From NCBI GenBank assembly GCA_047495785.1, contig JBLDXI010000054.1, positions 248,001 to 312,000 of the forward strand: a stretch of 64,000 nt of DNA, in the 5' to 3' direction. The translations under genes were made by a program, and so were the position numbers. This stretch comes from Lepidodermella squamata (lineage: Eukaryota; Animalia; Gastrotricha). Below the pieces are notes generated by a model. That model was not told the DNA's origin. It searched no databases and saw only the letters and a list, made by a program, of their open reading frames with translations. Below are positions 41,266-59,046 of this stretch, piece by piece. Each line of letters begins with the position of its first letter. Position 1 is the stretch's first letter.

Positions 41266-41432
41266 TTTTGCAGTTGAACGTAGACTGATAATAAACAGAT
41301 GGCATAATGCTGTGGCTTGATGCTTCGTTGCCTGGCTACAGTCTCCCAGTCGCTATGGGGAAAATCGATTTGCAGCTGCTCTCACCACGAACGCCGTCAG
41401 TGCGATAGCTTGGTACATTTATTGTCGTTGAC

Positions 41433-41989: not shown

Positions 41990-42063
41990 ATTACGCGAAA
42001 CAAATAATTTCCTGAATAAGTTTATTCTTGATGACAGTTTTGCGTCTCCATATATGCCTATTC

Positions 42064-42190
42064 ACAAAATTTGAAAAAATAAAAAAGTTGAGACGCGAGT
42101 TGGAATCGAACCAGTTACTTTATTCATACAACAAATTTGAAAAAGTTAAAAAAACTTGTGACGCGAGATGGAGTCGAACCGCATCCTTTA
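42064..42190 (-). promoter_or_regulatory. Two tandem B-box + oligo-T units
   Basis: Minus-strand GGTTCGATTCC (42102-42112) and GGTTCGACTCC (42170-42180), each followed by CTCGCGTC and T6-7; 68-bp spacing. Confidence 0.6.
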
Positions 42191-42221
42191 TAAGCATTAT
42201 AAGAAAGCGCATTTTTGTGTG

Positions 42222-42561
42222 TACACTGTGGCGTAGTGGATAAAGCGTCTGCCCTAGCAGACAGGCCGTACCTAGGCCTTAAACGGGGAGTGATGCCGCT
42301 AACGTGTTTGCCCAGGCGGTTAAACTGAGCAACGTCCTGGTACCGACGTAAAAAGGTCCCGTCCAAAGACGTAAAACTAAAACGACCTTGGTAGCGTCGA
42401 AAAACCTATCACGACATTTGTGAGGTCGTTAAAACTTCTATGTTAGGGAGATGAGCAACCAGTTCTCCACTGCGGTGAAAACTGCATGTTTTAAACTGGA
42501 AGGAAAGTCGTAGAAGACCTTCAGGCATCACGGGGCGGAGACTTTTGCTTTCGCAATTTTT
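42222..42561 (+). ncRNA. Putative Pol III-type structured ncRNA with a tRNA-like head (~340 nt)
   Basis: TATAAG at -33, A box TGGCGTAGTGG at +8, many hairpins, long-range helix GTGATGCC/GGCATCAC, terminal hairpin followed by T5. Confidence 0.6.
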
Positions 42562-42607
42562 ATTTACAGCATTATATAAAGTAATAACAAGTATATAGGT
42601 TGGGCCT

Positions 42608-42689
42608 CGTCCCGTAGCTCAGTGGTTCACGCACTGGGCTTTCCGTTTTGAGGGTCGGGTTCGAGTCCACACTGAAACAGAGAATTTTT
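42608..42689 (+). ncRNA. tRNA-like Pol III unit (not a canonical tRNA)
   Basis: TATAAA at -33, A box TAGCTCAGTGG (42615), B box GGTTCGAGTCC (42658), T5 at 42685; the acceptor stem does not pair. Confidence 0.6.
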
Positions 42690-42782
42690 CTTTCTTTTCT
42701 TCTCTTTCTTCTTCTTTCTCTTTCTCTTTCTTCTTCTTCTTTCTCTTTCTCTTTCTTCTTCTTTCTCTTCTTTTCTTTCTTT
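42685..42782 (+). repeat. Pure polypyrimidine (TTC/TTTC) tract
   Basis: About 100 nt containing only C and T. Confidence 0.85.
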
Positions 42783-42785
42783 AGA

Positions 42786-43058
42786 TTAAAACTTTTGCTT
42801 TTTCATTATCCAACTTCCACGATCCGTACTTTCAATAATATGACTGCTCAGAAGCGAATTAGATTGTCGAATTTCGCCCACTTCACGAGAATTCAAACAG
42901 TAAAAGTCATTTATAATATTCAGTAATATATTATTCTCCTCGGTGAAATCGAACACCCAGCCGTAGCAATTATCCATGTACATATCCAATTTCGATAAAT
43001 AGAACTGAAGGCTTTTGAGTTCCTGAGGGCTTTTGGGGTACTTGATCATTTGCTCCAT
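42786..43058 (-). CDS. Polinton hypothetical protein
   Basis: Short ORF directly downstream of pPolB. Confidence 0.45.
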   Translation of the reverse strand: MEQMIKYPKSPQELKSLQFYLSKLDMYMDNCYGWVFDFTEENNILLNIINDFYCLNSREVGEIRQSNSLLSSHIIESTDRGSWIMKKQKF

Positions 43059-43091
43059 TTTCACCTTATCTTATAAGCCTCACTGCTTTAA

Positions 43092-46000
43092 CTAAAAGAG
43101 GGAATCGCTACTTCTCATCAGCTGCATGAAATCAATCATGAAATGGCCGTGCGCGAAAGTGTTGATGCCATCATCACTGACCCATCGCTTATCATCATAG
43201 GGACACAGGGCAATCTTGGAACTTTGCATCGTAACTAAATTATGGGAGAATGATCGAATCTGATTGAAATTTATATTGACTACTTTCTTGTTCTTCACGC
43301 AATCCCTGTAATGGTCGAATGTCAGCTTCGACTTCACACCCTGCCGCTTAACTCCCTTCGCCTTTTTTATTTCATCTTTTTCTGAGTACAAAATTGCATA
43401 GACCTTGGATCGTGCCCCGGCGAATTCTCGTATTACACGTCCCTTTGCTTCGTCTTTAAATACGCCGTTAGTTTTACAGTTGACAGTTGAGAATAGGAAG
43501 TGATCTTTAGGATAATCAGAGAAATCGAATAGGTTTTCGATGGGTTTCATGTCTGTGTAAACGTCTTCAGTTGTGATATGGTAGCACAACGAATCTGTGT
43601 CTGTGAAAAGAAGCTTAGCTTTGTCGCCGTACTTTCGTTTGATGACATTGTAGTGGAAGTCGTACATATGCACCTTGGACAAATCCAAAATGGCTGCTCC
43701 AACGATAATTGGTCGATCATAAAAGATCTCAGTTTTTGCCATTTCCACGCTGAACAGCTCGTCACTTATCTTCTTAGCGTCCTTGAATGTTGGTTTGTTT
43801 ACTAGTTTCTGAAGCTTCTTAGGGCAAGTAACCAGTTTTAAGTCAATGCGATTCCGAACGTTCTCACAAGTTTTACCGAAAATGACGTTATTCATCAGTT
43901 TGAAAAACCCCTTCTCAAATTCGTTGCTAGCCTCTTTTCGCTTTCGAGTATTGAATGCGATATAGGGCTCGGCCCAATTGCTCTGTTTGAACTTCAAAGC
44001 TCGGTGCACCTTTTTCAGAACTAAACCATTATCAAGAGCTTGCTGTAGCGCGCGATAGTGCATGACGTAATGTTTCTTGTCGTTCAGATTTTGTGTTAGC
44101 TTTTTCACCTTCGCCGGCCTGTTTAGTCCTAATTGCTTATGCAGATCTTGCATGTGAGGGCTCGGTTCGCAAAGAATATGCTCTGGACAGAACGGATAGT
44201 CATTATGTGAGTCATGAAGCCTTGCAGGATAGTCGATATCAACCTCCAGCATGTACCCGAATTCGTCTTTGGCCCCAAGTGACTTCACGAAATCTTTGGT
44301 GATTGCTTCAGGACCAATCCATTCGAAGTCTTTCTGCGGTAACCACTGGGTCATCGCGAAAGAATAAAGCGCGTTGGCGTCCCAATACATTATAAACGAT
44401 TTCGGAGCATTTGCGTCATAGTCTGTCATACCTTCGTTATTAGCCTTCGCGTACCTCCCAGGAATAACAGCTATACCGCCTCTTATGCCTTTTTCAACGA
44501 ATTCAAGCATCTCCTTATTATCAAAGAGATCCAGTTCAACACGTGTGTATTTCAGCATCGCGTCCCAACTTAACCCAGGTGCACCTAAATAATGCGCCGG
44601 GTCCAGATCGTAATAGCTTATGCAGGTGTCTCGAAAACTGTCAAAACAATCTGCTAACAAGAGAACATCTGTTTTCAAATACAGGTCGTGGTAGTCTTTC
44701 AGAGTTTTGCAATTCAGTTTTGACCAAACGGTTTGTGCGTGTTCATAATCCTCGTCAGATATAGAAGTTATTTCGATTTTGTTATCATCAAGCGAACAAG
44801 AATTTAGTCTGTTTGAGAAATGCGACTTATTCGGTAGCTGAGTTTCATTCAGTTTGTCGAGGCTATCTATATAATCGTACGGATAAACTCCCTTTCGAAG
44901 CAGCAGGGATCTTTGTTCAGTTGTGAACTTAGAAAGCTGTTCATCAAAATGAGCGAACCTCTTTCCCGATTTTTTCAGATTACTGACTATTTGGTCCAGG
45001 CTTTCACTCATAAACTGAAACGAATCGATAAATCGAAGTTTGCCTATACTAAAACTTGAATACTTTTCCGAGGAATTAGCTATGACGTCAATCGTCAACA
45101 GGTTTGGTCTTTTCTTTTTGTCTTCTTTTTTGAAATTTGCAATCTTTTCTCCATTGATTTCGTTCACTACTTTTCCGGCTGCCTGCATTATCAAGTGCGA
45201 ATCGTACCCACTCAGGTTATGAAAAACAACCGGGATGAAAGAATGCTTGAGATTCAAATTCAGATTGCAGGCATTATGAGCAGCTCCTCTGAAACGGCCT
45301 GTAAGATGGTCATGATCGCGGACTTTATCGTCGCCCAAGGCGCTTCGGCAAACATGGCAGTGCTGTGCATTATCATAACTTTGTTGCTCTGGTTGAGATA
45401 ACACCATGTCTTTATTGGTTTCCTGGATAAATTTCCTCAAACTGTATTGCTTTTTAATCAAGAATCTCAGGAACTGCTCCGCACAATTTGCCCCTTCAAA
45501 CTGCCAATACTTCGAACGGATCTCAGGTACCTTACTAGCCAGTAAACATCCGAAGGAATTCGCAACATGCTTCTGATAAATCAAGGACCTACCCTTTTGA
45601 ACATCGGAATTCGTTAGCGTAGTCTCCGCATCACAATAGAAAACAAACGGTACTTCAAGCTGCTTGTAGTAATTTTTGAAAATAACTCGGCTACCTTTCG
45701 GAGGAAACTTCACTATGACGTTGCCATTTACTATGCAATTATGCTCTTTAAGCTTTATTTCGCTGTCGAATCCAGTCAGACACTGTAAGCACCAATGCTT
45801 TTTGTGCTGATCAGAACTAGGCAGCAACCGGCTCAAATTTTTTATCCAGCTGAAGTGTGCTATCACCTTAGCACCGTCTCTGAGAGTAGTTCGCAGTAGG
45901 TTAACTTCTTGGGCGTACGGTTTCTTCGACGCGTAGTATGAAATAAAGCGATGGCAACCATCTTTTTCTTTGTATTCAATCACGTTGATCTTTATCCTAT

Positions 46001-47135
46001 TCTGATCTTCAAGATTTGAAATATCGTTCCACGAAATGGGAAACTTGATACCGTCATGTTTCAGTTCATTTTTAAATAACTTGTACTTGGATGTTTCCTG
46101 TGCATTTTTATCTACTGGATGCAAGCAAGCCAGCATGCTCCAGATTATGCATTCATCGTCGGTGTTTTTAACATTTATAACGGCCTTTTTATCAGCAATA
46201 AACTTCGGTGTTGGAATGTAAGATCCTGTCCCTAACGGGCAGTAGCTGAAAGCACAAACACGGAGTCGCGAAATGTTTTGAAAGATCCATCCGGAGCCGC
46301 GCTGCTCGTAATTCTCAATGGCACCACCAAGTTGAGAGAAGTGTTGGTCTACAACGCTCCCTATGTCATCATATTTCCTGATAACTGGGGCAGCCTTTAC
46401 AGCGGAAGACCATTTATGTTCTGATTTACTATTGTTGTCTTTTTTCCAATTCAAATCAGCGTTAAACACGATTTTGATGTTATCATTTTGCTCTAATTTT
46501 TCTTGCACGTAGTTAACAACTGATTCCCTAGCCTTTTCGGTAAATAGATGGAAATCACTTCCTGAATTATGAGCTTCAATGTCTAACCTATAAAGGATAT
46601 TCTTGAAATGCTCGGGATTTTTCTGCTCATTAAATTCCATGTAATTGTTATCCTCAAGAGAGTTAATCCGCTCGATATAATTGTAGCCTTCGGCAATCAA
46701 CTTGTTGTACGTTGGTCCACCCCATTTGATGAATTTCAAAGTCTTAGGATTTATGACATGATTTTCTTTCTGCCCTCTGAACACCATTTCACCAGCAGCA
46801 TTCAAGAAATAGCCATCTTTACGCAGCCTCTGATAGTCCTGGCTGCCCCTTTTTATCTTGCTCACACCTCGTTTCATAAGCTGATTATTCGCATCGTCAT
46901 AGAAAAACTCCTTTTCAAGTTTTTTGAAGTTGGACGAACCGATAGAAATATATTTGTTTGTGATAGGATTTAATACTGTTTTCCGTTGGGTTCTCTCGTA
47001 AGGCATCCCACCCTTCGTCCAACGGTTATCTTTTAATTCAAAACCCTTCCTCAATAGCGCATTGTATGCTCGGCCACCAACCTTAATACGACGACCGTTA
47101 GGTCCCATTACATTGGTTTCACTGTTGTCGGTCAT
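43092..47135 (-). CDS. Protein-primed family B DNA polymerase (pPolB)
   Basis: Exonuclease motifs YCDAE, HNLSGYD, YLKTDV; polymerase motifs YWDANALYS, KLMNNVIFGK, FTDTDS; endonuclease VII-like Zn insert CHVC...DHDHLTG...HNACN. Confidence 0.97.
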   Translation of the reverse strand: MTDNSETNVMGPNGRRIKVGGRAYNALLRKGFELKDNRWTKGGMPYERTQRKTVLNPITNKYISIGSSNFKKLEKEFFYDDANNQLMKRGVSKIKRGSQDYQRLRKDGYFLNAAGEMVFRGQKENHVINPKTLKFIKWGGPTYNKLIAEGYNYIERINSLEDNNYMEFNEQKNPEHFKNILYRLDIEAHNSGSDFHLFTEKARESVVNYVQEKLEQNDNIKIVFNADLNWKKDNNSKSEHKWSSAVKAAPVIRKYDDIGSVVDQHFSQLGGAIENYEQRGSGWIFQNISRLRVCAFSYCPLGTGSYIPTPKFIADKKAVINVKNTDDECIIWSMLACLHPVDKNAQETSKYKLFKNELKHDGIKFPISWNDISNLEDQNRIKINVIEYKEKDGCHRFISYYASKKPYAQEVNLLRTTLRDGAKVIAHFSWIKNLSRLLPSSDQHKKHWCLQCLTGFDSEIKLKEHNCIVNGNVIVKFPPKGSRVIFKNYYKQLEVPFVFYCDAETTLTNSDVQKGRSLIYQKHVANSFGCLLASKVPEIRSKYWQFEGANCAEQFLRFLIKKQYSLRKFIQETNKDMVLSQPEQQSYDNAQHCHVCRSALGDDKVRDHDHLTGRFRGAAHNACNLNLNLKHSFIPVVFHNLSGYDSHLIMQAAGKVVNEINGEKIANFKKEDKKKRPNLLTIDVIANSSEKYSSFSIGKLRFIDSFQFMSESLDQIVSNLKKSGKRFAHFDEQLSKFTTEQRSLLLRKGVYPYDYIDSLDKLNETQLPNKSHFSNRLNSCSLDDNKIEITSISDEDYEHAQTVWSKLNCKTLKDYHDLYLKTDVLLLADCFDSFRDTCISYYDLDPAHYLGAPGLSWDAMLKYTRVELDLFDNKEMLEFVEKGIRGGIAVIPGRYAKANNEGMTDYDANAPKSFIMYWDANALYSFAMTQWLPQKDFEWIGPEAITKDFVKSLGAKDEFGYMLEVDIDYPARLHDSHNDYPFCPEHILCEPSPHMQDLHKQLGLNRPAKVKKLTQNLNDKKHYVMHYRALQQALDNGLVLKKVHRALKFKQSNWAEPYIAFNTRKRKEASNEFEKGFFKLMNNVIFGKTCENVRNRIDLKLVTCPKKLQKLVNKPTFKDAKKISDELFSVEMAKTEIFYDRPIIVGAAILDLSKVHMYDFHYNVIKRKYGDKAKLLFTDTDSLCYHITTEDVYTDMKPIENLFDFSDYPKDHFLFSTVNCKTNGVFKDEAKGRVIREFAGARSKVYAILYSEKDEIKKAKGVKRQGVKSKLTFDHYRDCVKNKKVVNINFNQIRSFSHNLVTMQSSKIALCPYDDKRWVSDDGINTFAHGHFMIDFMQLMRSSDSLF

Positions 47136-47227
47136 GATTGTATATATTATACTAAGAAAATAATCTTTAAGTAATTTTCCGCAATTGAAGAAAATCTTAT
47201 ATAGTTTTTTTCTGATGATAATATATA

Positions 47228-47527
47228 ATGACTACAAACACGATTAAGCAAAGAGGTCGCCCGAAGAAATATCTGACTGAAGAAGAACGCGAGACAGGCT
47301 ATCGTGATCAGCATCGTATAGCTTGCAAAAACTACTGGAAGAAAACTATGGAAGTTGTTAGAGCAAGTCGTGGACAGGGAAAATGTCATGAAGTAACTTC
47401 ACAAATGGAAGGAGCGATCACAAGTGACAGAATGTGTGAGCCTAAGCCTGAAAACCTTACGACGAAGGATATAGAGGAAATTATAAATCAAATGTTGGCA
47501 ACAAAACTGCAAAAATTGCTCTCATAG
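47228..47527 (+). CDS. Small AT-hook-like basic protein
   Basis: RGRPKKY-x-TEEER motif; divergent from pPolB. Confidence 0.6.
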   Translation: MTTNTIKQRGRPKKYLTEEERETGYRDQHRIACKNYWKKTMEVVRASRGQGKCHEVTSQMEGAITSDRMCEPKPENLTTKDIEEIINQMLATKLQKLLS

Positions 47528-47552
47528 GCTTCACTGTGCGGTCATGATTGAA

Positions 47553-48974
47553 CTAATCCAACAAGTTATCAGCGGGCTCCCAAGTCGGCTTATCATATCC
47601 TGCCCATTTGACGTAAACCATTTCTTTACCTTTAACTTTCTTCCTTCTCAAAATCTTTTCAACCCGGTAAAGGTTTTCTTGCTGTTGGGAAGATTTCTGC
47701 AATTCCTGTTCGTAAAAGCTACCTACTACTGGTTCACCATCTAGAGCCTCGATTTTATAGGTTCTAGGAATGGTTTCGTTAACCTTGACGACTTTAAGAA
47801 GCTCTTCACTCCATGAAGGGTGGAAACCTTTTTCAAAGGTCTCTTTCAGTCGGCTGATCCTCACAATGTCACCAAGAGCGAACTTGGGCTTACGTAACTT
47901 TTTTTCATCTGATTCCGCGTACAAATTGTTGTGAACGATGTCTCTATTCTTTGGATCTATCGCCTGAGTTGGCGTCATTCGAATCGATCTGTGCTTAGTA
48001 AGGTTGTACTCTCGAACTAGGTCATCTAATATTGCAACCCAATTACGTGAGTTGTTAAGTGTAAAGCGTTTCCACATTCTAGTTTTAAGAGTCCTGTTAA
48101 ACCTCTCGATCATAGGGTTATGAAAATTTTCATAGGTCGAGTACCGATTCACCTTATTTGCTTTCAACCATTTAGTGAAGATTGAATTATAAAATTCACT
48201 ACCCTCATCGACCCAAATATTTTTAGGCTTTCGTCGGCTTGTCTTAATAACTGATGAGAAGGCATCGAAAACACTTTTTGCGTCTTTTGATTTCAGTGGG
48301 ACGGCCCATGCATATCTGCTGAAGCAGCATATCACGGTCAAAATGTACTTATAGCCATTATTGTCATCGGTCAAGTCGTTCATGAAGACAATGTCCATGC
48401 CCCATGTGTCGTCAACGTTATGCACATAAACGCGACGTCTTGGAAACCGCTTTCTTGCGGGTTTATGAAGCTCCTCAGCTAATGTTTCAAACTTCATTTT
48501 GCTAACTGTTTCTGATCGCGGCGGCTCTTGTTTTGTCTTTCGCTTCGGAATTTGTTGCGAGTAGCTAACAGGTCTCCTATCTCGAAGAGCCATGCCTTTC
48601 CCTTGCAGATGGTCAGCGATTCCACCTTCAACGAACGTTTTGTAGACAAATGCTGCCATAGCCCTCTCATAACCACTTTTCGATCGATCACTAGCAATCC
48701 TGAGTGCCTTGTCTGCAAGAATTCTATCGCTAACGGTGCGTCGCTCTCTGTCTTTGTAAAAGTGATAAGCAGCGTCATGTTCTCTGGCTGCCTCGTCCAA
48801 CTCATTTATACCTCTGTAGCCCTGGCTCATTCTTTGAACAAAATGTGTTCCTGGGCCAGCGTAGCTATATGACTGCTTATTGTTATAAGACCCTCCAGGA
48901 ACGGTTTCTCCTTGAACGGGATAACTCGGTAAATGGAATTCCACCGGCAAATTGTTAATTATTCTGTCAAACAT
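47553..48974 (-). CDS. PLA2-like domain fused to a retroviral-type integrase with chromodomain
   Basis: YAGPG and HDAAY (parvoviral-type PLA2); DDE triad WGMD / VDEGSEF / IERFNRTLK; chromodomain VEKIL...VKWAGY...TWEP. Confidence 0.93.
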   Translation of the reverse strand: MFDRIINNLPVEFHLPSYPVQGETVPGGSYNNKQSYSYAGPGTHFVQRMSQGYRGINELDEAAREHDAAYHFYKDRERRTVSDRILADKALRIASDRSKSGYERAMAAFVYKTFVEGGIADHLQGKGMALRDRRPVSYSQQIPKRKTKQEPPRSETVSKMKFETLAEELHKPARKRFPRRRVYVHNVDDTWGMDIVFMNDLTDDNNGYKYILTVICCFSRYAWAVPLKSKDAKSVFDAFSSVIKTSRRKPKNIWVDEGSEFYNSIFTKWLKANKVNRYSTYENFHNPMIERFNRTLKTRMWKRFTLNNSRNWVAILDDLVREYNLTKHRSIRMTPTQAIDPKNRDIVHNNLYAESDEKKLRKPKFALGDIVRISRLKETFEKGFHPSWSEELLKVVKVNETIPRTYKIEALDGEPVVGSFYEQELQKSSQQQENLYRVEKILRRKKVKGKEMVYVKWAGYDKPTWEPADNLLD

Positions 48975-49010
48975 TATTCATTAGGACTTGAAATTCTAAA
49001 TAAAGAGCAA

Positions 49011-49703
49011 ATGATCAATTGGGACAGCATCGTTCAATCACAACGACAGGAGTACAAAAATGGATCTCCCTTTTTCCCTCAGCATCCTTCTCGATGTCTT
49101 ATTATTGGACCGTCCGGGACCGGAAAGACTTCAGATCTGCTGACAATACTGCATAACTCCTTTTTTCACAAGATCTACTTATATAGTAAAACTCTTGATG
49201 AGGACAAGTACGAGTACCTGATTAAGCTTCAGAAACAGAAGGAAGACATTCTTTCCAAGCAAGGAATTTCAGTAAACCTTGTTCACTCTTCCAATGACAT
49301 TTCTGAAGTCATGCCTCTTGAAGGCCTAGATAAAAGTTACCAGCATGCTTATATATTCGACGATATTTGTATGGAGCAAAAGAGGCTGCAAGAAACACAT
49401 ATCGGTGCAATGTGGATAAGATGCCGTAAGTACAACGCGTCAGCCTTTTATCTTTCGCAGTCATATTTTAAGATCCCAAAGGCAATTAGGGATAATGCCG
49501 ATTTTGTTGTGCTGAAGAAGCTGGCTGACAACAGGGAGCTGAGCATAATTCATCGAATATACGCCCCCTCAATTAAGACAACTGAATTTTTTGCCAAGTA
49601 CAATGAAGCCGTTAGCCTTCCTCATGGTTCGTTTATCATTGACAGTCAAAGCAAGCCACAGTGTCTACGACTTAGAGCTAATTACGCTTCAATCTTCGCC
49701 TAA
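49011..49703 (+). CDS. A32-like DNA packaging ATPase
   Basis: Walker A GPSGTGKT, Walker B YIFDD, RCRK, LSQSYF..PKAIRDN. ATG 49011 is preferred over 48933. Confidence 0.93.
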   Translation: MINWDSIVQSQRQEYKNGSPFFPQHPSRCLIIGPSGTGKTSDLLTILHNSFFHKIYLYSKTLDEDKYEYLIKLQKQKEDILSKQGISVNLVHSSNDISEVMPLEGLDKSYQHAYIFDDICMEQKRLQETHIGAMWIRCRKYNASAFYLSQSYFKIPKAIRDNADFVVLKKLADNRELSIIHRIYAPSIKTTEFFAKYNEAVSLPHGSFIIDSQSKPQCLRLRANYASIFA

Positions 49704-49903
49704 TCATTTTTAACTTTTAAAAATTAGTTTAAATTATCTATCAAACAGTTTGAATTATCTTGGCTTTACTGATTACCTCCAGTATAAGATGAGTTCAACT
49801 GAGCGTTCAATAGGCGATCATTAGGCGTTCAAGAAGCGATCATGTGGCTAACGAGGAGCGACCGCTGGGCGAAAAAGGAGCGATTTATTCTAGCCAGAGT
49901 GAT

Positions 49904-50947
49904 ATGCCGCTACGCGAATTAACAACTGATGAACAAATTCGAATTCTTGAAGATTTAGATAAGCAGGAGAAGATGTACGACCGACACTTGGCCATGGTTA
50001 AAGGTGATGTATATGCTTTAAAGTATAAGCATAGTGTAAATGTTGAACCCGATCCCCTTACAGCTTTGCATGAGACTTACAGGCAGATGCCAACTGTAGA
50101 GGCAATAAGATCCGTTGCCAAGGAGCTCAAACAAACAGCAAAGAGAAGCTTACCAACAGCTAATCACCCGCATCACCTAGAAGCGGTATTACCAAAGGCG
50201 GAACCGACAACTGAAGAGGCGAAGGAATCAGTGGAGGACATAGTTTTGAAGAGACATAACTTCCCCACAGCTAAAGAAATTGAAGAGGCTGGGGCTGACC
50301 CCGCGCATATTATTGTATCTCTTTCGCACTATAATAAAAATGTGTTGGGCTCCCAACTAGCTCAGCTCACTAAAAAAGGATACAAAGACTCTCCACAGTA
50401 TCAATCGATTCAAAATGATATACAGATTTTGAAAAACTTCAAGAACTCGTTGCTTGAGACATTTGAGAATCAAAGGGTGCTACTTGAGAAAACTGGTACA
50501 GGTATATCCAACAATTATTTGAAGATTGGTAGGTTTTACGCCAGAAAAGACGACATAAAGCGAGGGGTTTTAAGGATTCGCAAGAAGAATAAAGGCAAAG
50601 TGCAAGGTTTAGCCGATATAGACATAAGTGATGGTGTCAAACAATTGCTCTTGAAAAGGTACAATCCGAAGGTGAACTTTTCCAAGCAAGACTATGATCA
50701 ATACCAAAAAATTTGTGAACTGACTGGATATCGACCAAAACCCCATTCTAAAATCTGGAACAGAATTTACGTGACTGATGTTGTTGATGCCCAAAAGAGG
50801 CTCGTAAACGCGATTGGTGAAATCAGAGCGGGAAACAATAACGCTGAAATATATAACGAAGTTGTTAGTATTGCAGATTTTCTTTTGAAGAACAATAGAT
50901 TGACCAAAGCTGAATACGAAAATCTAATAACAATGGTAAATGGGTGA
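49904..50947 (+). CDS. Polinton PZ-like protein
   Basis: C-terminal RL...GEIRAGNNN...I..FL.....LTK.EY motif typical of PZ. Confidence 0.65.
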   Translation: MPLRELTTDEQIRILEDLDKQEKMYDRHLAMVKGDVYALKYKHSVNVEPDPLTALHETYRQMPTVEAIRSVAKELKQTAKRSLPTANHPHHLEAVLPKAEPTTEEAKESVEDIVLKRHNFPTAKEIEEAGADPAHIIVSLSHYNKNVLGSQLAQLTKKGYKDSPQYQSIQNDIQILKNFKNSLLETFENQRVLLEKTGTGISNNYLKIGRFYARKDDIKRGVLRIRKKNKGKVQGLADIDISDGVKQLLLKRYNPKVNFSKQDYDQYQKICELTGYRPKPHSKIWNRIYVTDVVDAQKRLVNAIGEIRAGNNNAEIYNEVVSIADFLLKNNRLTKAEYENLITMVNG

Positions 50948-51680
50948 TCCAATATTTCTGCCTTTGGAATATTACTGCAATAACAGATCGGACGCCAGCA
51001 ACGTCATCGATCGTTACCTAAATGATAAGATCGATTTCACAAAGCGCAGCATCGCCGTTTCATATATTCACTTTTACGATGTTTTTTATAATGTATCACA
51101 GGCTTCAGGTAATAGTAAGCTCAGATATAAAGATCCAGAAGATGCGACTTTTGAAATACGATTTCCTGATGGAACCTTCACTTTTCGTGATTATAACAAT
51201 TATATTCACTTTGTTATGAAAGGAAACGGCCATTTCAAGACCATCGATGGCTCAGAAGTTTACGGCATAAGCTTATCTGTCAATACTGTTCTGAATAAAC
51301 TGAGCTTTCGAATTCAACCAGGTTACGCTCTTCTGATCGAGCATGATGCTACGTCTGAATTTCTAGGTGTAGACAAAGGCGAATTCCGAGCAGATTTTAA
51401 TGGGCAACATATTCCTAACATCACGATGTCAAATGACTCAATGTTTGTTCACTGTAACGTCGTCAATAATAGCCTAGTCCCGGAGGTTAGTGATGTCATC
51501 TTCACCTGTCCGATTAACAAAAATTTCGGTCAACACGTTAACATTGTTCCAAATGAGAAACGTTACTTGTCCTGTACGAATGCTAATACACAAAACATAA
51601 AAATAACGCTCACCACCCAGGCTGGTGCAACACTGGAGATGACTGAAAGAAAATGGGGTATTGGTCTAGATATTCGCTAG
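50940..51680 (+). CDS. Minor capsid protein (penton)
   Basis: FPDGTFTFRDYN and VHCNVVNNS motifs; ~250 aa, beta-rich. Confidence 0.8.
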   Translation: MGDPIFLPLEYYCNNRSDASNVIDRYLNDKIDFTKRSIAVSYIHFYDVFYNVSQASGNSKLRYKDPEDATFEIRFPDGTFTFRDYNNYIHFVMKGNGHFKTIDGSEVYGISLSVNTVLNKLSFRIQPGYALLIEHDATSEFLGVDKGEFRADFNGQHIPNITMSNDSMFVHCNVVNNSLVPEVSDVIFTCPINKNFGQHVNIVPNEKRYLSCTNANTQNIKITLTTQAGATLEMTERKWGIGLDIR

Positions 51681-51703
51681 CTTTTTCTAGTTACTTTGTT
51701 ATA

Positions 51704-52003
51704 ATGAAAAATCGCAGAACTAAAGCATATGTCGTAGGACGCGGTTACGTAGACATCGCAAGAAATATGCTCGACAAATTGACTGGTGTCTTACCGGTTC
51801 AGACTTTAGCCAAATCAGCTCTTTCAAAGGCAGCGGAAGTTGCCGGTGACAAAATAGGTGCATATGCCGCAAATAAACTTGCAGACAAAGTTATGCCGGC
51901 AAAGCCAGCTGAGCGCTCTATTCAGGCTATTGAGGAGCTTGAGAAGAAAATCAAAAGAGACATCGATAATTACACCGGAACAGGCTTTAAGCTGATACGC
52001 TAA
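51704..52003 (+). CDS. Small basic core-like protein
   Basis: VVGRG and YTGTG motifs, Ala/Lys-rich amphipathic helix, located just before MCP. Confidence 0.6.
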   Translation: MKNRRTKAYVVGRGYVDIARNMLDKLTGVLPVQTLAKSALSKAAEVAGDKIGAYAANKLADKVMPAKPAERSIQAIEELEKKIKRDIDNYTGTGFKLIR

Positions 52004-52022
52004 ATATCTAATGCATATATAA

Positions 52023-53396
52023 ATGCTTCAATCCGAAATAGTGAACTGTCTCTTTGAGAGCCCGACCATAGATGATCGGCAGTTCGAAAGGAAAAGCTGG
52101 GCCGAGGTTTGTGCAACAAGCTTTATACAGGATCAGCCCTCTCAGCCTTCTCGCCTTATCTTTTCTACATATAACTTGCGTGAGTTGTTTATATTGCCGA
52201 GGGAAGCCTATATCCAGTTGACTGTTGAGTTCCGACGAAACGATAGTCAGGCTTTCAAAGCAACCGACAAGTACGCAATTAGGAACCATGTTATATCCAT
52301 GTTTGAAACAGTTGAAGTGCAAGTAGGTGATAATGATAACCAGGTAGAGCAAACACGTTATAACGAACACTGGAGCTCGTTGCTGGGCGTTATTCACTGG
52401 TCTGATGACTATGCGCGAAGTCTTGGGGAAGAATCACTTTTCGCCAGAGACTACCCAGCCCATGTCAATTATGATATGACTCCTGAAGTTACAGCAGAAA
52501 GTTTCGACCCTGCGAAGAACAGCTGCAACGAGGGACTACTCTTGAGATCTTTGTATGTTAAGGATCATAAGATGGTTGTCACACTTTACTTAAGGGACAT
52601 TCCTTTCTTCCAAAATTATTTTGGGATGTGGACCAAGGCGAGATTTCGTGTGATATTAACACCAAATTACACCAAACCCATAGTCGCAGCCATAGGGAAA
52701 AACGATGATTTGCCGGAAGGGATGCATTTCCAAATTTCGTCAGCTTATATGTTTATTCCGGAAGTCACATTGATGCCTGAAACTAGAGCACGCATTTTGA
52801 AAGCCTTCAATACGGGTCTCACGAAACTTTACAAATGGCAATCGCTAGAATGCTTTCAGAGCCCCCAGTTTGCTGTGAATAGTTCATCGGTACAATGGAC
52901 AATCACATCTGAGATGAAAAAACCAAGCTGGCTGTATATTGTATTCTTGCAAGACTTCTCAGACGCAGAGTATCAAACAAAACTGACACAAATTTACACT
53001 CAGTGGAATATATTCAGCTACTCTCTCATGATAAACAATAAGGAGGCGTTTGCCGAGGCCAACATGAACTTTTCCCGCTTCAACGCTCACCGGCTCTATA
53101 ACTATATTAAGGAAAACATGAACCATTTCAATGATCGTGAAAGCACGAACACTGGTAGTCAGCTTAGTTACCTTGATTTTTGTCGATTTTACCGTTTCCT
53201 GGCATTCAATCTGGAAAGTGTAGATGCCGGTGCTATATATAATTCACGCGGTGACCAAAGCGTGAGCGTCACATTCAAAGCTAGAATCAGCCCTGTCGAT
53301 AAGCCATTAGTTATGTTTTGTTTTATTTTTAGAGAAAAAGAAATAGGCTTCAACTACAAAGACGACAAGCTCGAGATAAGCCTTAACATGCTCTGA
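52023..53396 (+). CDS. Major capsid protein (double jelly-roll)
   Basis: 457 aa, beta-rich; ILPREAYIQL, NHVISMFE.VEVQV, KPSWLYIVF, FLAFNL; position in the structural block. Confidence 0.85.
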   Translation: MLQSEIVNCLFESPTIDDRQFERKSWAEVCATSFIQDQPSQPSRLIFSTYNLRELFILPREAYIQLTVEFRRNDSQAFKATDKYAIRNHVISMFETVEVQVGDNDNQVEQTRYNEHWSSLLGVIHWSDDYARSLGEESLFARDYPAHVNYDMTPEVTAESFDPAKNSCNEGLLLRSLYVKDHKMVVTLYLRDIPFFQNYFGMWTKARFRVILTPNYTKPIVAAIGKNDDLPEGMHFQISSAYMFIPEVTLMPETRARILKAFNTGLTKLYKWQSLECFQSPQFAVNSSSVQWTITSEMKKPSWLYIVFLQDFSDAEYQTKLTQIYTQWNIFSYSLMINNKEAFAEANMNFSRFNAHRLYNYIKENMNHFNDRESTNTGSQLSYLDFCRFYRFLAFNLESVDAGAIYNSRGDQSVSVTFKARISPVDKPLVMFCFIFREKEIGFNYKDDKLEISLNML

Positions 53397-53417
53397 ATTT
53401 TCTAACTTAGAATAATA

Positions 53418-53996
53418 ATGACTAAATACATTCCATTCGACATTAAACTAACAGAGACACAGAGAAGAGCATTTCAAAAACCAGGCCAAGTTGTATTGCG
53501 TTTCACAATTGATCAGCTTCTTGCAGATCCAAATGGTTCCAAGTTGTTGTTGACGCAAAGGCAGATAGATAAAGTAATGAAGAGCAAACAAAGGATGAAA
53601 GGGCTTGATATTAAACTGAGCAAAACTCAGCTCCGGAAGAATCAGTCTGGCGGGTTCCTGTTACCAGCGCTTGCCGCAGCTTCCAAATTTATAGCACCTG
53701 TAGCTGTTGCAGCGCTGAGCGGCCTTGCCAGTTCCCTCGCCAGTACAGCAGCTGACAAGATCGTAGGCAAAGGCGTGTCGCTGACAATACCAAAAGAGGA
53801 TTTAAATGAACTGCAAAAGGCGGTTTCGCTTCTGGAATCCCGACAAATTGTGCCTGCTGGCAGTAGTAAGGCAATTAAAAGCCATATAGAGCAACAGGGT
53901 GGAGCTTTTATCTTGCCGCTTGTATCAAGCTTACTGGGTGCATTCCTTCCGACCTTATTCGGAAAAGGGGTTTATATGCCGTGGGAAAAAAACTGA
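53418..53996 (+). CDS. Protein X-like core/membrane-active protein
   Basis: LSKTQL...QSGGFLLPAL and QQGGAFILPL (adenovirus pX-like), plus IVGKG and LFGKG sites. Confidence 0.7.
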   Translation: MTKYIPFDIKLTETQRRAFQKPGQVVLRFTIDQLLADPNGSKLLLTQRQIDKVMKSKQRMKGLDIKLSKTQLRKNQSGGFLLPALAAASKFIAPVAVAALSGLASSLASTAADKIVGKGVSLTIPKEDLNELQKAVSLLESRQIVPAGSSKAIKSHIEQQGGAFILPLVSSLLGAFLPTLFGKGVYMPWEKN

Positions 53997-54439
53997 CAAA
54001 TACCGGGTTTTATCCCCTATCCAATCTTGAGATAACCGAAGCTTTGAAGAGGCTCCTCGGAAAAGACTTCAAGGGCTGTTATGCTCGGGATGACCTTCCT
54101 GATAAACTTGAACGAGGATATTACGTCATTAACCTGGACGATAAAGTTAACCGCGGAAGTCATTGGGTCTCAATGGCTGTGAAGTCGACTGAAATAATCT
54201 ACTTCGATAGCTTCGGGTTTATATGCCCTAATGAGATCATTAAGCGTCGCGGCAAACGAGTTATTTGGTATTCCACACATGATATACAACATCCTGGCTC
54301 TGTTGCATGTGGCTTCTATGCCATTTACTTTCTAAGAGAATTAGGTAAAGGTAGGGATAAGTTAGCTATTTTGCTAGACTTCAATAACACCGGGTCACCG
54401 CACAATGATGACTTACTGAAAAATCTATTGTTAAGCTAG
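53987..54439 (+). CDS. Adenain-like cysteine protease with no ATG; -1 frame of the preceding ORF
   Basis: PLSN, INLD...GSHWV, YFDSFG, IQ...CGFY catalytic H/D/Q/C. Confidence 0.9.
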   Translation, partial: KKLTNTGFYPLSNLEITEALKRLLGKDFKGCYARDDLPDKLERGYYVINLDDKVNRGSHWVSMAVKSTEIIYFDSFGFICPNEIIKRRGKRVIWYSTHDIQHPGSVACGFYAIYFLRELGKGRDKLAILLDFNNTGSPHNDDLLKNLLLS

Positions 54440-54441
54440 AT

Positions 54442-54621
54442 ATGTATTGCCTGCATTGTAGGAAAAACACTAAATCAGTGAATGAGCAGCAATTAGCCAC
54501 TCGTAATAACCGAGCTCTCATGACAGGATCTTGTACACTCTGCGGTATGACAAAGTATAAATTCATAAGAATGTTAAAGAGAAACGCCATCGTAGATAAA
54601 AAGGATGCAAGCGTCCGTTGA
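54442..54621 (+). CDS. 59-aa zinc-ribbon protein (DUF5679-like), absent from the ORF track
   Basis: MYCLHCRKNT...TRNNRALMTGSCTLCGMTKYKF; TCTA 14 nt upstream. Confidence 0.75.
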   Translation: MYCLHCRKNTKSVNEQQLATRNNRALMTGSCTLCGMTKYKFIRMLKRNAIVDKKDASVR

Positions 54622-55111
54622 AGATGAATTGAAGAGACTGATGGATAATTTTGAGAATTCTAAATCAGTGAGAAAGACATTTTCTACCATGCCTTACGTG
54701 TATTGCGATGCGTGTGCCACAGAACTTTTGCTTGACGAAAGGGCGAATTTCAACGTATGCCCAAACTGCGGTTTATGTTATCCATACTGTGAGCACTCCC
54801 CGCCATTCAAATTAGTACCTTACAAACGAAAATGGCATTTAATGACTGTAATTAAAAAGCGCGGTATAGAAATGCTACCTCCTCAACTTGAGAGGCTGAT
54901 GTCGAGCTTTATCAAGTTTGACTCGGGCTATGCAGAACTCTTTCCCGATCAAAATATGATGCACCTTGACTTTGTTATCAAAGCTCTGGCTCAGGAACAT
55001 GGATACGACCTTGTGGCACAGAGCGTACACGTGAAATCGGTTAACGATAAGACGCTGAGGCAATGGCGGAATAAGTATAATCTAGTCATCGCTCATTATG
55101 AGATCGAATGA
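54605..55111 (+). CDS. VLTF3-like (poxvirus A2-type) late transcription factor
   Basis: CDAC...VCPNCG zinc ribbon followed by PYKRKWHL. Confidence 0.7.
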   Translation: MQASVEDELKRLMDNFENSKSVRKTFSTMPYVYCDACATELLLDERANFNVCPNCGLCYPYCEHSPPFKLVPYKRKWHLMTVIKKRGIEMLPPQLERLMSSFIKFDSGYAELFPDQNMMHLDFVIKALAQEHGYDLVAQSVHVKSVNDKTLRQWRNKYNLVIAHYEIE

Positions 55112-55757
55112 AATATTCATTCCAAGTGAATGGTTTGAAAATACTCGACAGGCAGCAATTTATTTGAGGGCAGACGGCAGTACTCCATTCGCGGCAAACC
55201 TAAACGCGAATAGCTACTGCATCGAAAATTTGGGCGGCCCCGTTTTCGACAACGATGCTGTAAGCAAAAATTGGGTTGAGCGAAGTTGTTTAATGATTCA
55301 ATCCGATCAGACTGTTGACTTTAAAAATGCTAGGCTCACGAACATCCATCCACCAATAAATCCAAACGATGGCGCGATTCGGGCTTCCAGATTGATATGC
55401 TCTGGCAAGGTTTCTCTTGCGCGCGAGAATAAGCTAAGTTTTGATAACATGATTTCCGGAATGCCTGAAGTAAGCGATAGCTTAGTGTTTCGGGCAGACT
55501 TAACAGCCAGAGTGGAAATGTGGTTCCGGCTGGACGACAACAGAGCCACATCCTTCACCCTTGATTTCTTCAAAAACAACGGTAACTTGTTCTCGAAATA
55601 CTTCAACTATAACAATGTTAATTTGGAGAGCAGCAATGAATACTGTTCCTTTATAGAGCGATTCCGATTGAATGATAGCTTAACGGTTATTGCAGCAGCT
55701 GACGAAAGCATACAACTGTCATACATTTTGATTATTTCTAACCTAAAGAATACGTGA
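55098..55757 (+). CDS. Fibre/spike-like protein
   Basis: YLRADG...LNAN...IENL..P...NDAVSK.WV fibre-shaft repeats followed by a beta-rich head. Confidence 0.6.
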   Translation: MRSNEIFIPSEWFENTRQAAIYLRADGSTPFAANLNANSYCIENLGGPVFDNDAVSKNWVERSCLMIQSDQTVDFKNARLTNIHPPINPNDGAIRASRLICSGKVSLARENKLSFDNMISGMPEVSDSLVFRADLTARVEMWFRLDDNRATSFTLDFFKNNGNLFSKYFNYNNVNLESSNEYCSFIERFRLNDSLTVIAAADESIQLSYILIISNLKNT

Positions 55758-56353
55758 TAAATATATTCAGAATGAATGACAACCAGCTAAAAACAGTAGA
55801 TAGTATTTACCCCACTGCTCCTAGACTACAAATGTCTTCTACTCAAGAGTTCAGGCTTGCTGAGCTCCGGCGCCTAAATGATGTTTTCAACACAGAAATA
55901 TCGAAAAGAAAGAAGCTTTATAATAGGTATTCCCGTTTTTCGTCAATTTGCAAAGCTACTATTCATGGAATAACGGGCGGCACAACATCGCTTGCTATTG
56001 GTGGAATCGCACTACTGTCACTTGGCCTCCCAACCGGTATAATGTTGGAGATTACTGCAGCTTCGGGCGGCATGGTCATACTAGCTCTCAACCTGCTTGA
56101 CTTAAAGTTCGAAAGGAAAGCCGAAAAACATGAAAGAATCGCCACTCTTGCCATGTCGAAAGCCAACTCAATAGGCGACATGATCAAAACAGCCCTGGAA
56201 GATAACCACATCAGTGACACTGAGTATCAGGTTATTATGAGAGAAAACGAGAAATTCCATGATATGAAAAAGTTGCTTCAGAAGAGTTTAAACTGTGACC
56301 GCACGCAGATATTTCTTGAGGAACTGAAAAAGCACGGTGTGAACGTCCCTTGA
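55754..56353 (+). CDS. Polinton-type membrane protein (start GTG 55754 or ATG 55772)
   Basis: FRLAEL..., Gly-rich hydrophobic hairpin, KHERI..LA.SK.NSI...AL.D..ISD.EY. Confidence 0.65.
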   Translation: MINIFRMNDNQLKTVDSIYPTAPRLQMSSTQEFRLAELRRLNDVFNTEISKRKKLYNRYSRFSSICKATIHGITGGTTSLAIGGIALLSLGLPTGIMLEITAASGGMVILALNLLDLKFERKAEKHERIATLAMSKANSIGDMIKTALEDNHISDTEYQVIMRENEKFHDMKKLLQKSLNCDRTQIFLEELKKHGVNVP

Positions 56354-56354
56354 G

Positions 56355-56609
56355 CTAGCGAAAAGGCGAGTAAAATATCACACGTTTCTTTGGTGTTCTA
56401 ACTACTTTAGCATGATTGCCTTTGATTTTCGAAGGCTTTTTAATTCTATCCCTATTCACAAAATACCCTAGCAACGCGACGATTACACTCAATGCAACAA
56501 AAATGCGTTGAAGCTGGGTGTTCGTCCTTAAGCAGTCGATCTGAAGTTCTCTAACAAGCACCTTAATATATGAGATTATTTCTTCTTGGGCACTCGAGTA
56601 AGTATTCAT
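56355..56609 (-). CDS. Small single-TM protein with basic tail
   Basis: IFVALSVIVALLGYFV followed by a K/R-rich C-terminus. Confidence 0.55.
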   Translation of the reverse strand: MNTYSSAQEEIISYIKVLVRELQIDCLRTNTQLQRIFVALSVIVALLGYFVNRDRIKKPSKIKGNHAKVVRTPKKRVIFYSPFR

Positions 56610-56627
56610 TAAGTATTAAAACGATTT

Positions 56628-56963
56628 TTATTTTTCTCGTCGCGCCCTCATTTCAGCTATGAATTTCTCTATATCTGACTTCCTTTTCTGTCGCCGTTCA
56701 TACAGCTCAGCTTTGCGCCTCTGGCTCTGTAACTTACGGTCGTTATCTTCTTTTTCCCTTGCAGTCAGCAAATCGCTGTATTTCTGTTCAATGACAGCCT
56801 TCTCGTTCTCCAAAGTCTTAATACGGGTATTTGAGGACTGTCTCTTGAGCGAGGAATACTGATCGCTGATAATCTCAACTTCCTGCTTCAGTTTGTTGAT
56901 ATCTTCATCCTTCTCATCGACAATTTCATCGACCTCTGTGTATGAAAGAAATCCTTTCTCCAT
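56628..56963 (-). CDS. Coiled-coil protein
   Basis: Charged, heptad-like 111-aa ORF in a tandem leftward block. Confidence 0.55.
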   Translation of the reverse strand: MEKGFLSYTEVDEIVDEKDEDINKLKQEVEIISDQYSSLKRQSSNTRIKTLENEKAVIEQKYSDLLTAREKEDNDRKLQSQRRKAELYERRQKRKSDIEKFIAEMRARREK

Positions 56964-56970
56964 GCTTATA

Positions 56971-57228
56971 TTATTTACCGAGAAATCTTCTTCTTAGCAG
57001 GTAAGCTTTCTTGCCGCCGACATGGGTGACATCATTTGGAATCAGACTGACGTTGATGCCACCGCCCTTCAACGATGAGAACCGTTGTTGTTTGCCTAAA
57101 TGATAGTAAATCGTGCCTCTGCTGAGTCCCACTTCAGCTGCGATTTCATCTACTGTCTTGGAGCTATTCTGATATTCATGGATTGCTTGGCTGATTTTGT
57201 CTGGATTTATTGCCTTGCGACGAAGCAT
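56971..57228 (-). CDS. Helix-turn-helix protein
   Basis: TVDEIAAEVGLSRGTIYYHL. Confidence 0.75.
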   Translation of the reverse strand: MLRRKAINPDKISQAIHEYQNSSKTVDEIAAEVGLSRGTIYYHLGKQQRFSSLKGGGINVSLIPNDVTHVGGKKAYLLRRRFLGK

Positions 57229-57536
57229 CTTATATTTATTTGAGAAATTTAAATATTTAAATATTTCAATGTTCCATAGTTCAAATGTTCAAACTAAATA
57301 AAGGATGTCATCAGCCAATTTATATATTAAAATATTTTAACATTTGTATGTTGAAATGCGGATTGTTACTTCTGCAATCGATTGGCTTCAACGCCCGATG
57401 GAGTCACGTCATGAAAAGGAGAAGCTGCAAGAGATGTTGCTTCCCTCAAGTAACTCGCTGATTTGCGTAAATGAACAATGAACTATTCTTAAATTGAGGT
57501 AAATTTAAAAGTCAAAATGGGATGCAGTCAACAATT

Positions 57537-57830
57537 TTAGTCCTCGTCACTTGATGGCACAATGTCGTCAAATACAGTTAGAAATTGCGTAAATGCTTTT
57601 CGGGTTTCTTCATCATCAAAGGGGTACCGTTTAACTGCAGTTTCGACGCGTCTTCGCTCGATGTCTTCGTATGCAGATCTGCGCTTCTTTATCCTGCAGA
57701 ATCGAGATACTCTCGAATAGTGTGCCAAAGCATCTTCGATGCGCATTCTCGGAAACAGACTTTCCATTGCACGAACTTCTCGGTTGGGTTCGTCCCTAGT
57801 AGGCCTGATACTTTTGACATAGGTGCTCAC
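57537..57830 (-). CDS. Hypothetical protein
   Basis: ORF only; non-ATG start. Confidence 0.3.
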   Translation of the reverse strand: MSTYVKSIRPTRDEPNREVRAMESLFPRMRIEDALAHYSRVSRFCRIKKRRSAYEDIERRRVETAVKRYPFDDEETRKAFTQFLTVFDDIVPSSDED

Positions 57831-58661
57831 ATGGAAACAAAACGATGACAGGATGGGACCATATAAGGTTCTGCGATGGTCCTGCCAGTCATCATCAAGA
57901 TCAGGGGACGTTGTTAGGCAGTCCTGGTCATCGCTTACAGCTATGCATAACGAAGTCGAGGTTCAATCACGTATTTATCATACAACAATTTTTTACCAGA
58001 GACACCTCCTGCAGGTAGCCAAACTTTAACTTCTGCAACATTAGTACCATCTCTGTCCGCCAGTGCTGAAATTCGCTGTTGCTTGTTCGGTCCTGTCCAG
58101 TGGTAAGCTAATCTACACTCCATGCTTTCAGATGATGGGCAAGACTTTAGAAAAGTTACTACGCGTGCAAAATACAGGCGGCATACTGATAAGCACAGTT
58201 TGATCAATACACCTAGGGCGTCGTTGCCTTGGAAACTCCATTAATATTTAAACTTTTATCAATACATTGGCTAATGGAAATTCAATTATGTTTCTGATTC
58301 ATCGACACCCCATGATGAAAGCATTGCGCATTCATGTTGAAGGTATTGAATTATTCATGAAAATAAGACGGTATTGTTCGAACAAAATCAATAGAAAGAA
58401 CTATGCAGGTATGGAAACATATGTTGATTGACATTAAAGGATGCGGCTAGACATGCACTCAACTAATTCGTAAGCTAACCCTGTGTACGAACGATTCACA
58501 ATACATTTGAACAGCTGTGTAATTAAAGATTGTTTAGGTCTGAAAGGAAAGAAATTAAAATAAAATCGCCTGTTCGGAGATGAAAATATGAGAAGATCCA
58601 TAGATTGGTGCCTTTGAGAGAGGATCTACCAAATGGCGCGAACCCCAGGGCACCTCCCTCG

Positions 58662-59040
58662 ATGTTCAGCGCCTGGGACGCCATTTTGTTTCAAGGCATT
58701 TACACCGCGTCAATTGAATCACCCTATTTCAGTTTTCAGGTCATCGATCATCGCTGCCAGCTGAACCAGTCGTGCGATGAGACACTAGGAACTGAATTTC
58801 GCTTGAAGAGAAAGATTGAAACCACTCCCGTTATTATCGATTCATCATCGCTTGAAAAGGGGCGGGGTTTGAACTACCCGGTCCGCCCGGTGGTGCGGGC
58901 CCTACCCCACCAAACCCAGGCGGACAAGACCCCCGCCCATTTACGCGGTGTCACTTGAATTTCAATTTAATTTAATTCGAGTTATCAGGTCATATTCACC
59001 TGGCCGGCTGCCCGGGCTAGTATCGGTATTTCTTACTACT
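58662..59040 (-). repeat. Right TIR
   Basis: Inverted copy of 40325-40703. Confidence 0.97.
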
Positions 59041-59046
59041 TCTAAC

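Follow-up and report, generated by a model that had tools for sequence, protein, structure and literature searches.

The 64,000-nt stretch analysed here (positions 248,001 to 312,000 of contig JBLDXI010000054.1, assembly GCA_047495785.1, from the gastrotrich Lepidodermella squamata; hereafter the window, in whose numbering all positions are given) carries an apparently intact Polinton/Maverick element embedded in host DNA (Table 1). The first-pass annotation of the window had called this element a Polinton in an animal genome, and it is indeed a bona fide Polinton in an animal-type genome. It is bounded by long terminal inverted repeats (TIRs) of 379 nt which are 99% complementary, and flanked by a 6-bp target-site duplication (TSD) which occurs as a single copy at three paralogous empty sites in the window. 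Its gene content is canonical, with a family B DNA polymerase (PolB), an rve integrase (Pfam rve, 48.5 bits; cut-off 32.6) and a morphogenetic module comprising an A32-type ATPase, a borderline adenain-like protease and a double jelly-roll major capsid protein (MCP). The morphogenetic genes lie in a block of 11 genes on the + strand, running from the ATPase to a membrane-protein open reading frame (ORF), and most of them are preceded at a short and steady distance by the same small box, a TCTA with an A/T-only flank.

Nine such boxes were found in the block, each at the coordinates and with the spacer proposed in the first-pass annotation. At eight of the nine sites an in-frame ATG of a + strand gene follows 11–14 nt after the TCTA, hence eight of the nine genes originally proposed to carry the box can be retained, whereas the ninth site, before the membrane-protein ORF, reaches a GTG only and has its first ATG 31 nt away. 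The four bases 5′ of TCTA are all A or T in 9/9 sites, and the base that follows is A in five, G in three and T in one, but never C. Neither the AT flank rule nor the no-C rule holds among the 16 other + strand TCTA of the block. Downstream of the boxes A+T content is 69–71%, compared to 59% in the block as a whole.

The box is anchored to the downstream ATG and not to the upstream stop codon, as the spacing to the ATG is steady at 11–14 nt while the distance to the stop varies: it spans −30 to +6 at the seven sites that have a gene end no more than 120 nt away, and is about +186 after the ATPase stop. Four boxes sit within the 3′ end of the upstream gene, as the earlier reading of the sequence had noted. 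No TATA box was found 20–45 nt upstream of the boxes, hence the box stands alone. Poly(A) signals, considered as a clue to nuclear versus cytoplasmic expression, were scattered and uninformative.

The association of TCTA with start codons is local to the block, as TCTA-N11-14-ATG is not enriched over the whole window (30 found, 36 expected). The 45 kb of host DNA outside the element contains 1504 ATGs, of which 16 (1.06%) have a TCTA at this spacing. Against that background, six of the 11 first ATGs of the + strand block have one (P 6e-10), rising to eight of 11 (P 3e-14) when the start codons chosen in the first-pass annotation are used. An unbiased scan of all 4-mers at all offsets ranked TCTA at −15 to −18 first, and its count of six was reached by shuffled upstream sets in two of 1000 trials and by random ATG sets never, so the enrichment over shuffled controls on which the original proposal depended is present. 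With the AT flank included, the pattern W4-TCTA-N11-14-ATG (W, A or T) has 13 matches on both strands of the window, of which eight are block gene starts and four lie in host sequence. Eight observed compares with 0.27 expected (Poisson P about 5e-10), a post hoc figure as the flank rule was taken from these very sites. Within the block, W4-TCTA also shows a strand asymmetry of 13 to 5.

The box is likewise restricted to one class of genes. It precedes eight of the 11 block genes and none of the 11 other genes of the element (Fisher 0.001), with the replication, integration and regulator genes lacking a strict TCTA box. Because the boxes are confined to the morphogenetic gene block, it is fair to regard the genes that bear them as a separate regulon. 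Of the genes said to lack the box, the VLTF3-like gene and the protease do so; the two Ly6-like ORFs have a TCTA, at 15 and 19 nt, though without the AT flank. One-mismatch variants with an AT flank, also part of the original claim, are present 13 nt before the AT-hook, helix-turn-helix (HTH) and integrase genes (3/8 compared to a 3.1% background, P 0.0014, post hoc); these could be weakly related to the box, or belong to a looser architecture.

Other motifs were seen outside the boxed class. An AT-rich hexamer family (AATATA, in 4/12 upstream regions) occurs at most ~15 nt from the ATG of the PolB and AT-hook genes (region 47136–47227) and of the 111-aa coiled-coil and HTH genes, and may represent a second promoter class. 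The coiled-coil and HTH genes (upstream of 56963 and 57228, both − strand) additionally share TTTCTC farther upstream. The six-base core that published papers give for the mimivirid early motif has 18 copies in the element, two of them before genes, the AT-hook gene (47183, + strand, −45) and the integrase (49020, − strand, −46); these two share a similar context and are not significant.

Table 1. TCTA boxes, genes and borders of the Polinton, in window coordinates
Feature	Position	Strand	Remarks
W4-TCTA box	48991..48998 (TCTA 48995)	+	12 nt to ATG 49011, second in-frame ATG of the ATPase; in divergent integrase/ATPase spacer
W4-TCTA box	49885..49892 (TCTA 49889)	+	11 nt to ATG 49904, first ATG of PZ
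W4-TCTA box	50919..50926 (TCTA 50923)	+	13 nt to ATG 50940, putative penton/minor capsid; inside upstream gene end
W4-TCTA box	51682..51689 (TCTA 51686)	+	14 nt to ATG 51704, second in-frame ATG of 'core'
W4-TCTA box	52003..52010 (TCTA 52007)	+	12 nt to ATG 52023, MCP
W4-TCTA box	53397..53404 (TCTA 53401)	+	13 nt to ATG 53418, gene X
W4-TCTA box	54420..54427 (TCTA 54424)	+	14 nt to ATG 54442, DUF5679 gene; inside protease ORF end
W4-TCTA box	55077..55084 (TCTA 55081)	+	13 nt to ATG 55098, 'fibre'; inside VLTF3-like gene end
W4-TCTA box, doubtful ninth	55733..55740 (TCTA 55737)	+	13 nt to GTG 55754, 31 nt to first ATG 55772, membrane-protein ORF
A32-type packaging ATPase	48933..49703 (ORF bounds; likely start 49011)	+	Pfam Pox_A32 E 7.4e-9, 35.9 bits, cut-off 22.8
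Gene 'PZ', 347 aa	49904..50947	+	ORF; no family match
Putative minor capsid (penton) gene	50940..51680	+	Assigned by position only; no family match
Small basic 'core' gene	51653..52003 (ORF bounds; likely start 51704)	+	ORF
Major capsid protein	52023..53396	+	13 relatives, 51–72% identity
Gene X	53418..53996	+	ORF; hydrophobic stretches rich in Gly/Ala
Adenain-like cysteine protease ORF	53981..54439	+	Pfam Peptidase_C5 E 2.7e-4, 21.1 bits, cut-off 21.3
59-aa Zn-ribbon gene	54442..54621	+	Pfam DUF5679 E 1.2e-13, full domain matched
VLTF3/TFIIB-like (weak assignment) Zn-ribbon and helical protein, 168 aa	54605..55111	+	No TCTA box
'Fibre' gene (putative name)	55098..55757	+	ORF; faint matches only
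Membrane-protein ORF	55754..56353 (first ATG 55772)	+	ORF with hydrophobic stretches
Three small genes: 84 aa, coiled-coil 111 aa, HTH 85 aa	56355..57228	-	No TCTA box
rve integrase	47553..48974	-	Pfam rve 1.1e-12, Phospholip_A2_4 4.9e-9, Chromo 4e-8
AT-hook-like small gene	47228..47527	+	One-mismatch variant box at 13 nt
Protein-primed family B DNA polymerase, 1347 aa	43092..47135	-	No TCTA box; endonuclease VII-like insert
Second Ly6/uPAR-like cargo ORF	41534..41989	+	Cysteine pattern
Ly6/uPAR-like (three-finger) cargo gene, two frames	40788..41265	-	Cysteine pattern
Polinton/Maverick	40325..59040	.	18,716 bp
Left terminal inverted repeat	40325..40703	+	379 nt
Right terminal inverted repeat	58662..59040	-	379 nt
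6-bp target-site duplication	left copy 40319..40324, right copy 59041..59046	.	

The ends of the element were set by alignment to uninterrupted paralogous host copies in the same window, and are exact because the Polinton interrupts one copy of a host-gene tandem array. Units of this array lie at 16.1–18.7, 21.7–24.3, 30.4–32.9, 34.8–37.2, 39.5–40.3 and 59.0–60.6 kb, 4.4–8.6 kb apart and 76–95% alike, each with a long ORF of the ANF-receptor family. The last copy holds the insertion, and the array yields the three empty sites, which are uninterrupted host paralogues near 16.9, 22.5 and 35.6 kb. The TSD itself starts with TCTA, however the host paralogues show its letters to be host sequence, hence the resemblance to the box is a coincidence. 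The flanking DNA codes for ANF-receptor-family proteins, Cys-loop ligand-gated channels and one FLYWCH protein. The insertion is young, as the core genes are uninterrupted ORFs and the terminal repeats are 99% alike; two genes are not simple ORFs, the protease and one Ly6-like cargo gene. Elsewhere in the window, a short tandem array with 19-nt spacing (27401–27633) lies within a 2-kb stretch of high GC skew (0.18).

Outside the block, PolB has >7000 relatives at E <1e-5, several with PF03175 and one named DNA-directed DNA polymerase, and the relatives that bear a name occur in two corals (one soft, one stony), a gastropod and a mussel. Judged from the flanking genes and these relatives alone, the host would be taken for an animal, probably a marine invertebrate. 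Compared directly with PDB, Pfam and PHROGs, PolB gave no polymerase match, and the endonuclease VII-like insert alone was matched. This stretch occupies residues about 577–627 (Pfam E 6.7e-4; PHROGs 4e-5) of a protein that also has a long N-terminal extension, and a PF02945 stretch or C2H2 zinc fingers occur in many of the PolB relatives too. The integrase has a phospholipase A2 (PLA2)-like domain (Phospholip_A2_4, above cut-off) N-terminal of the rve core and a chromodomain C-terminal of it; fusion of a PLA2-like domain to a Polinton integrase is unusual. Both Ly6-like cargo genes lie inside the element, adjoining the left repeat. They have no Pfam match and were assigned from the cysteine pattern of their translations, and the single frame change in the gene nearest the repeat is either a short intron or a frameshift.

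Within the block, two of the MCP relatives score above the cut-off for Pfam DJR-like_dom. The protease ORF overlaps gene X at the end of the latter. It lacks both a TCTA box and an ATG upstream of its catalytic region, which may reflect a start defect or a non-canonical mode of expression, for example from the X transcript. The 59-aa Zn-ribbon ORF, with its DUF5679 match, is a real gene with a TCTA box of its own. The VLTF3-like gene begins within its 3′ end, and this pair of zinc-ribbon proteins may be coexpressed or work together.

The 168-aa protein encoded by this neighbouring gene had been proposed as a VLTF3-like transcription factor, and the searches uphold weak VLTF3-like and TFIIB-like signals without settling on the former. 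Pox_VLTF3 (PF04947) gave no match to the protein at E up to 1, and the A2L zinc ribbon matched it at 16.2 bits (E 0.0086), below the cut-off of 22.9. Within its family, which has four invariant cysteines and an invariant basic-aromatic motif, A2L_zn_ribbon matches four of seven members (best 5.4e-5) and Pox_VLTF3 two of seven (best E 5e-4). A word-based search returned no relatives. The predicted model (pLDDT 75) has a zinc ribbon followed by a helical domain. In BFVD about ten of the first 27 matches are named VLTF3 or VLTF3-like; they are weak (E 4e-4 to 0.15, TMq 0.19–0.46, large root-mean-square deviation), and TFIIB models score similarly, so that the fold fits TFIIB equally well. In PDB the 13 best matches all belong to RNA polymerase II pre-initiation complexes (E 0.03–0.5), as chains which we take to be TFIIB, and the family profile found zinc-finger noise and the TFIIB ribbon at E 1.8 only. 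The protein can thus be described, weakly, as a VLTF3/TFIIB-like factor and is at most a candidate member of VLTF3. A longest contig of 9393 nt is given both for one of its relatives and for one MCP relative, which suggests that the two genes may be linked there too.

The first-pass annotation had also equated AT-flanked TCTA with the CroV late promoter used by mavirus, and published work bears this out. TCTA with AT-rich flanks is the promoter of mavirus and of type 4 endogenous mavirus-like elements (EMALEs), common to all type-4 EMALEs, and is the late promoter of CroV (Hackl et al. 2021, PMC8547959; Fischer & Hackl, 10.1101/068312); type-4 EMALEs alone are reactivated by CroV. ChlorV and CroV have the same late motif at the same position, peaking around −14, and the early motif lies around −34 (PMC13196603 and preprint). 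In the window the core is the same four letters with AT-rich flanks, and the box starts at −15 to −18 in eight genes, compared to the published peak around −14. At the sequence level the box therefore has the core, the flank and the position of the late motif of CroV and ChlorV, and of the mavirus promoter.

The likeness to mavirus and EMALE04 extends to the position just upstream of starts and to the setting, a TIR-bounded element with rve integrase and PolB in a eukaryotic genome. The systems differ in that the mavirus/EMALE04 host is a flagellate and the genome here is of animal type, that the box here is found only on the morphogenetic block and its promoter activity is predicted, and that the present element has no known helper virus. 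Its MCP also belongs to a Polinton lineage found in metagenomes and invertebrates, not to the virophage type. CroV and ChlorV supply an RNA polymerase themselves and use a distinct early motif near −34, whereas this Polinton has no polymerase, and the early core is echoed only faintly, and not significantly, before the two genes described above.

A subgroup of polintoviruses is already known from the literature to encode VLTF3. A VLTF3 homologue is given for stony-coral and other polintoviruses in Stephens et al. 2024 (PMC11131425, citing Krupovic & Koonin 2016), and MELD viruses with a VLTF gene are described in the adintovirus paper (PMC8502044). These viruses resemble the present element as an animal-associated Polinton lineage with a gene likened to VLTF3, and the PolB relatives named here fall in corals and molluscs. 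They differ in that the window protein is shorter, and the word 'promoter' has 0 occurrences in both PMC11131425 and PMC8502044. In the literature searched, no paper linked TCTA to an animal Polinton, and none of the polintovirus papers with promoter terms concerned an animal Polinton. A parallel for partial usage is PgVV-14T, a Polinton-like virus that is a virophage of Phaeocystis and has a giant-virus-type promoter motif on five genes (10.1101/2022.07.28.501842). As here, a subset of genes only carries the motif, however in PgVV-14T it is the early motif of a known helper on replication-type genes, whereas here a late-type motif precedes structural genes.

We consider it somewhat better than even (a probability of roughly 0.55) that the box is a core promoter which lies close to the start codon and serves one class of genes, the morphogenetic module, probably with an element-encoded factor and the host polymerase as its readers. 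Its form, four A/T bases, TCTA and any base but C, would be that of a compact core promoter or initiator lying 11–14 nt before the starts of the ATPase, PZ, penton-like, core, MCP, X, DUF5679 Zn-ribbon and fibre genes, and perhaps of the membrane-protein gene. Each of these packed or overlapping genes would thereby be transcribed from a start of its own, with a leader a dozen or so bases long, and the box would set the morphogenetic genes apart as one co-regulated class from those for replication, integration and regulation. We infer that the box acts in transcription initiation and that the class is a 'late' one, the timing being read from the structural nature of the block genes. More tentatively, the reader would be host RNA polymerase II (Pol II), directed to the box by an element-encoded factor. 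This is the most economical arrangement, as the element lacks an RNA polymerase, resides in a nuclear genome and has its putative regulators outside the TCTA class. Small DNA-binding candidates in that position are the VLTF3/TFIIB-like, HTH and AT-hook proteins, of which the 168-aa VLTF3/TFIIB-like protein would be the best.

Several points weigh against this proposal. The evidence comes from a single element, convergence is cheap because the specific core is only 4 nt long, and both initiation role and timing are things we infer. Two of the eight starts depend on the second in-frame ATG of their ORF, and no ATG lies within 30 nt of the ninth site. Leaders of 12–15 nt are unusual for animal Pol II transcripts. 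The candidate factor falls below every Pfam cut-off, its fold matches are weak (TM 0.3–0.49; E 2e-4 to 0.5), and an exhaustive search of 1.8 billion representatives found as few as six clear relatives, besides one junk and two marginal hits. We know of no link between VLTF3 and TCTA recognition. Nor is the VLTF3-like gene clearly 'early', because it lies inside the TCTA block, directly behind a TCTA-driven gene.

The box might instead be an initiator-like element, with a pyrimidine-purine start within TCTA, used directly by host Pol II and its general factors, in which case the likeness to CroV would be convergence. Such a signal would fit the nuclear location of the element and its lack of a polymerase, the shortness of the core, and the AT-flanked variants before the AT-hook, integrase and HTH genes, which hint at a looser general architecture. 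A general host signal would be expected neither to be confined, in its strict form, to one gene class nor to lack enrichment before the ATGs of the 45 kb of host sequence, where only the 16 spaced and four flanked matches occur. It would also be working without a TATA box or other upstream partner and with leaders atypical for animal genes. We therefore regard direct use by the host as possible, although unlikely.

Less probable is a virophage-like dependence, in which the boxes are read by the late machinery of a nucleocytoplasmic large DNA virus (NCLDV) co-infecting the animal host or an associated cell, and the integrated element stays silent until infection, as mavirus does with CroV. The shared core, AT flank and position favour such a helper, as do the reactivation by CroV of precisely those EMALE04 elements that have the TCTA motif, and the very short leaders typical of such promoters. 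However, Sputnik and mavirus are reported to use their helper's late promoter extensively, whereas here the box is on 8–9 of 11 block genes and 0 of 11 other element genes, which would leave replication and integration genes without a helper-type promoter. For the same reason the NCLDV-style late regulon of the first-pass annotation stands in part: confinement of the box to the morphogenetic block supports a regulon, but the split between TCTA and non-TCTA genes is unlike usage in mavirus and Sputnik. The published giant viruses that use TCTA infect protists, with none of an animal found in the literature searched, the window holds no giant-virus sequence, and the element has candidate transcription factors of its own. 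Together these points make dependence on a helper improbable. The sequence itself lends no direct support to several of the first-pass proposals: that a helper giant virus or the VLTF3-like protein reads the box, that the class is late, and that the element may have antiviral value.

An RNA-level signal would explain the box as a processing site, for example a spliced-leader acceptor, repeated for each cistron of one long precursor transcribed from the integrase/ATPase spacer. The genes are indeed on the same strand and tightly packed or overlapping, the box is anchored to each start codon, and three sites can be read as a pyrimidine tract ending in AG. Against this, no known processing signal of this form was found, and the splice-acceptor version is rejected because an AG is missing from the box at six of the nine sites, leaving RNA processing a very remote prospect. 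Chance, combined with the reader's freedom in choosing start codons, could draw on the two second ATGs, the one GTG and the lack of window-wide enrichment, but is rejected by the first-ATG count (still 6/11), the positional scan (family-wise rate about 0.002) and the flank-rule count, and is practically untenable.

Polintons, virophages and giant viruses are regarded as related by descent, on the strength of their proteins. If an animal Polinton does share a position-specific promoter box, that kinship would gain a regulatory link. The further step, an inherited 'late' promoter grammar common to animal Polintons, mavirus-type virophages and mimivirid giant viruses, read in this lineage via the small VLTF3/TFIIB-like factor, is doubtful at present; its boldest form, in which an integrated animal element answers to a co-infecting large DNA virus as mavirus does to CroV, would amount to a virophage-like inducible element in a metazoan. 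If the class-specific core promoter proposed here is real, Polintons would run a two-class programme, with regulator and replication genes in one class and capsid genes in the other, and would in this respect be virus-like rather than transposon-like. A box before the capsid-module genes would also provide a sequence handle for asking when and where such elements are expressed in invertebrates, using existing transcriptomes.

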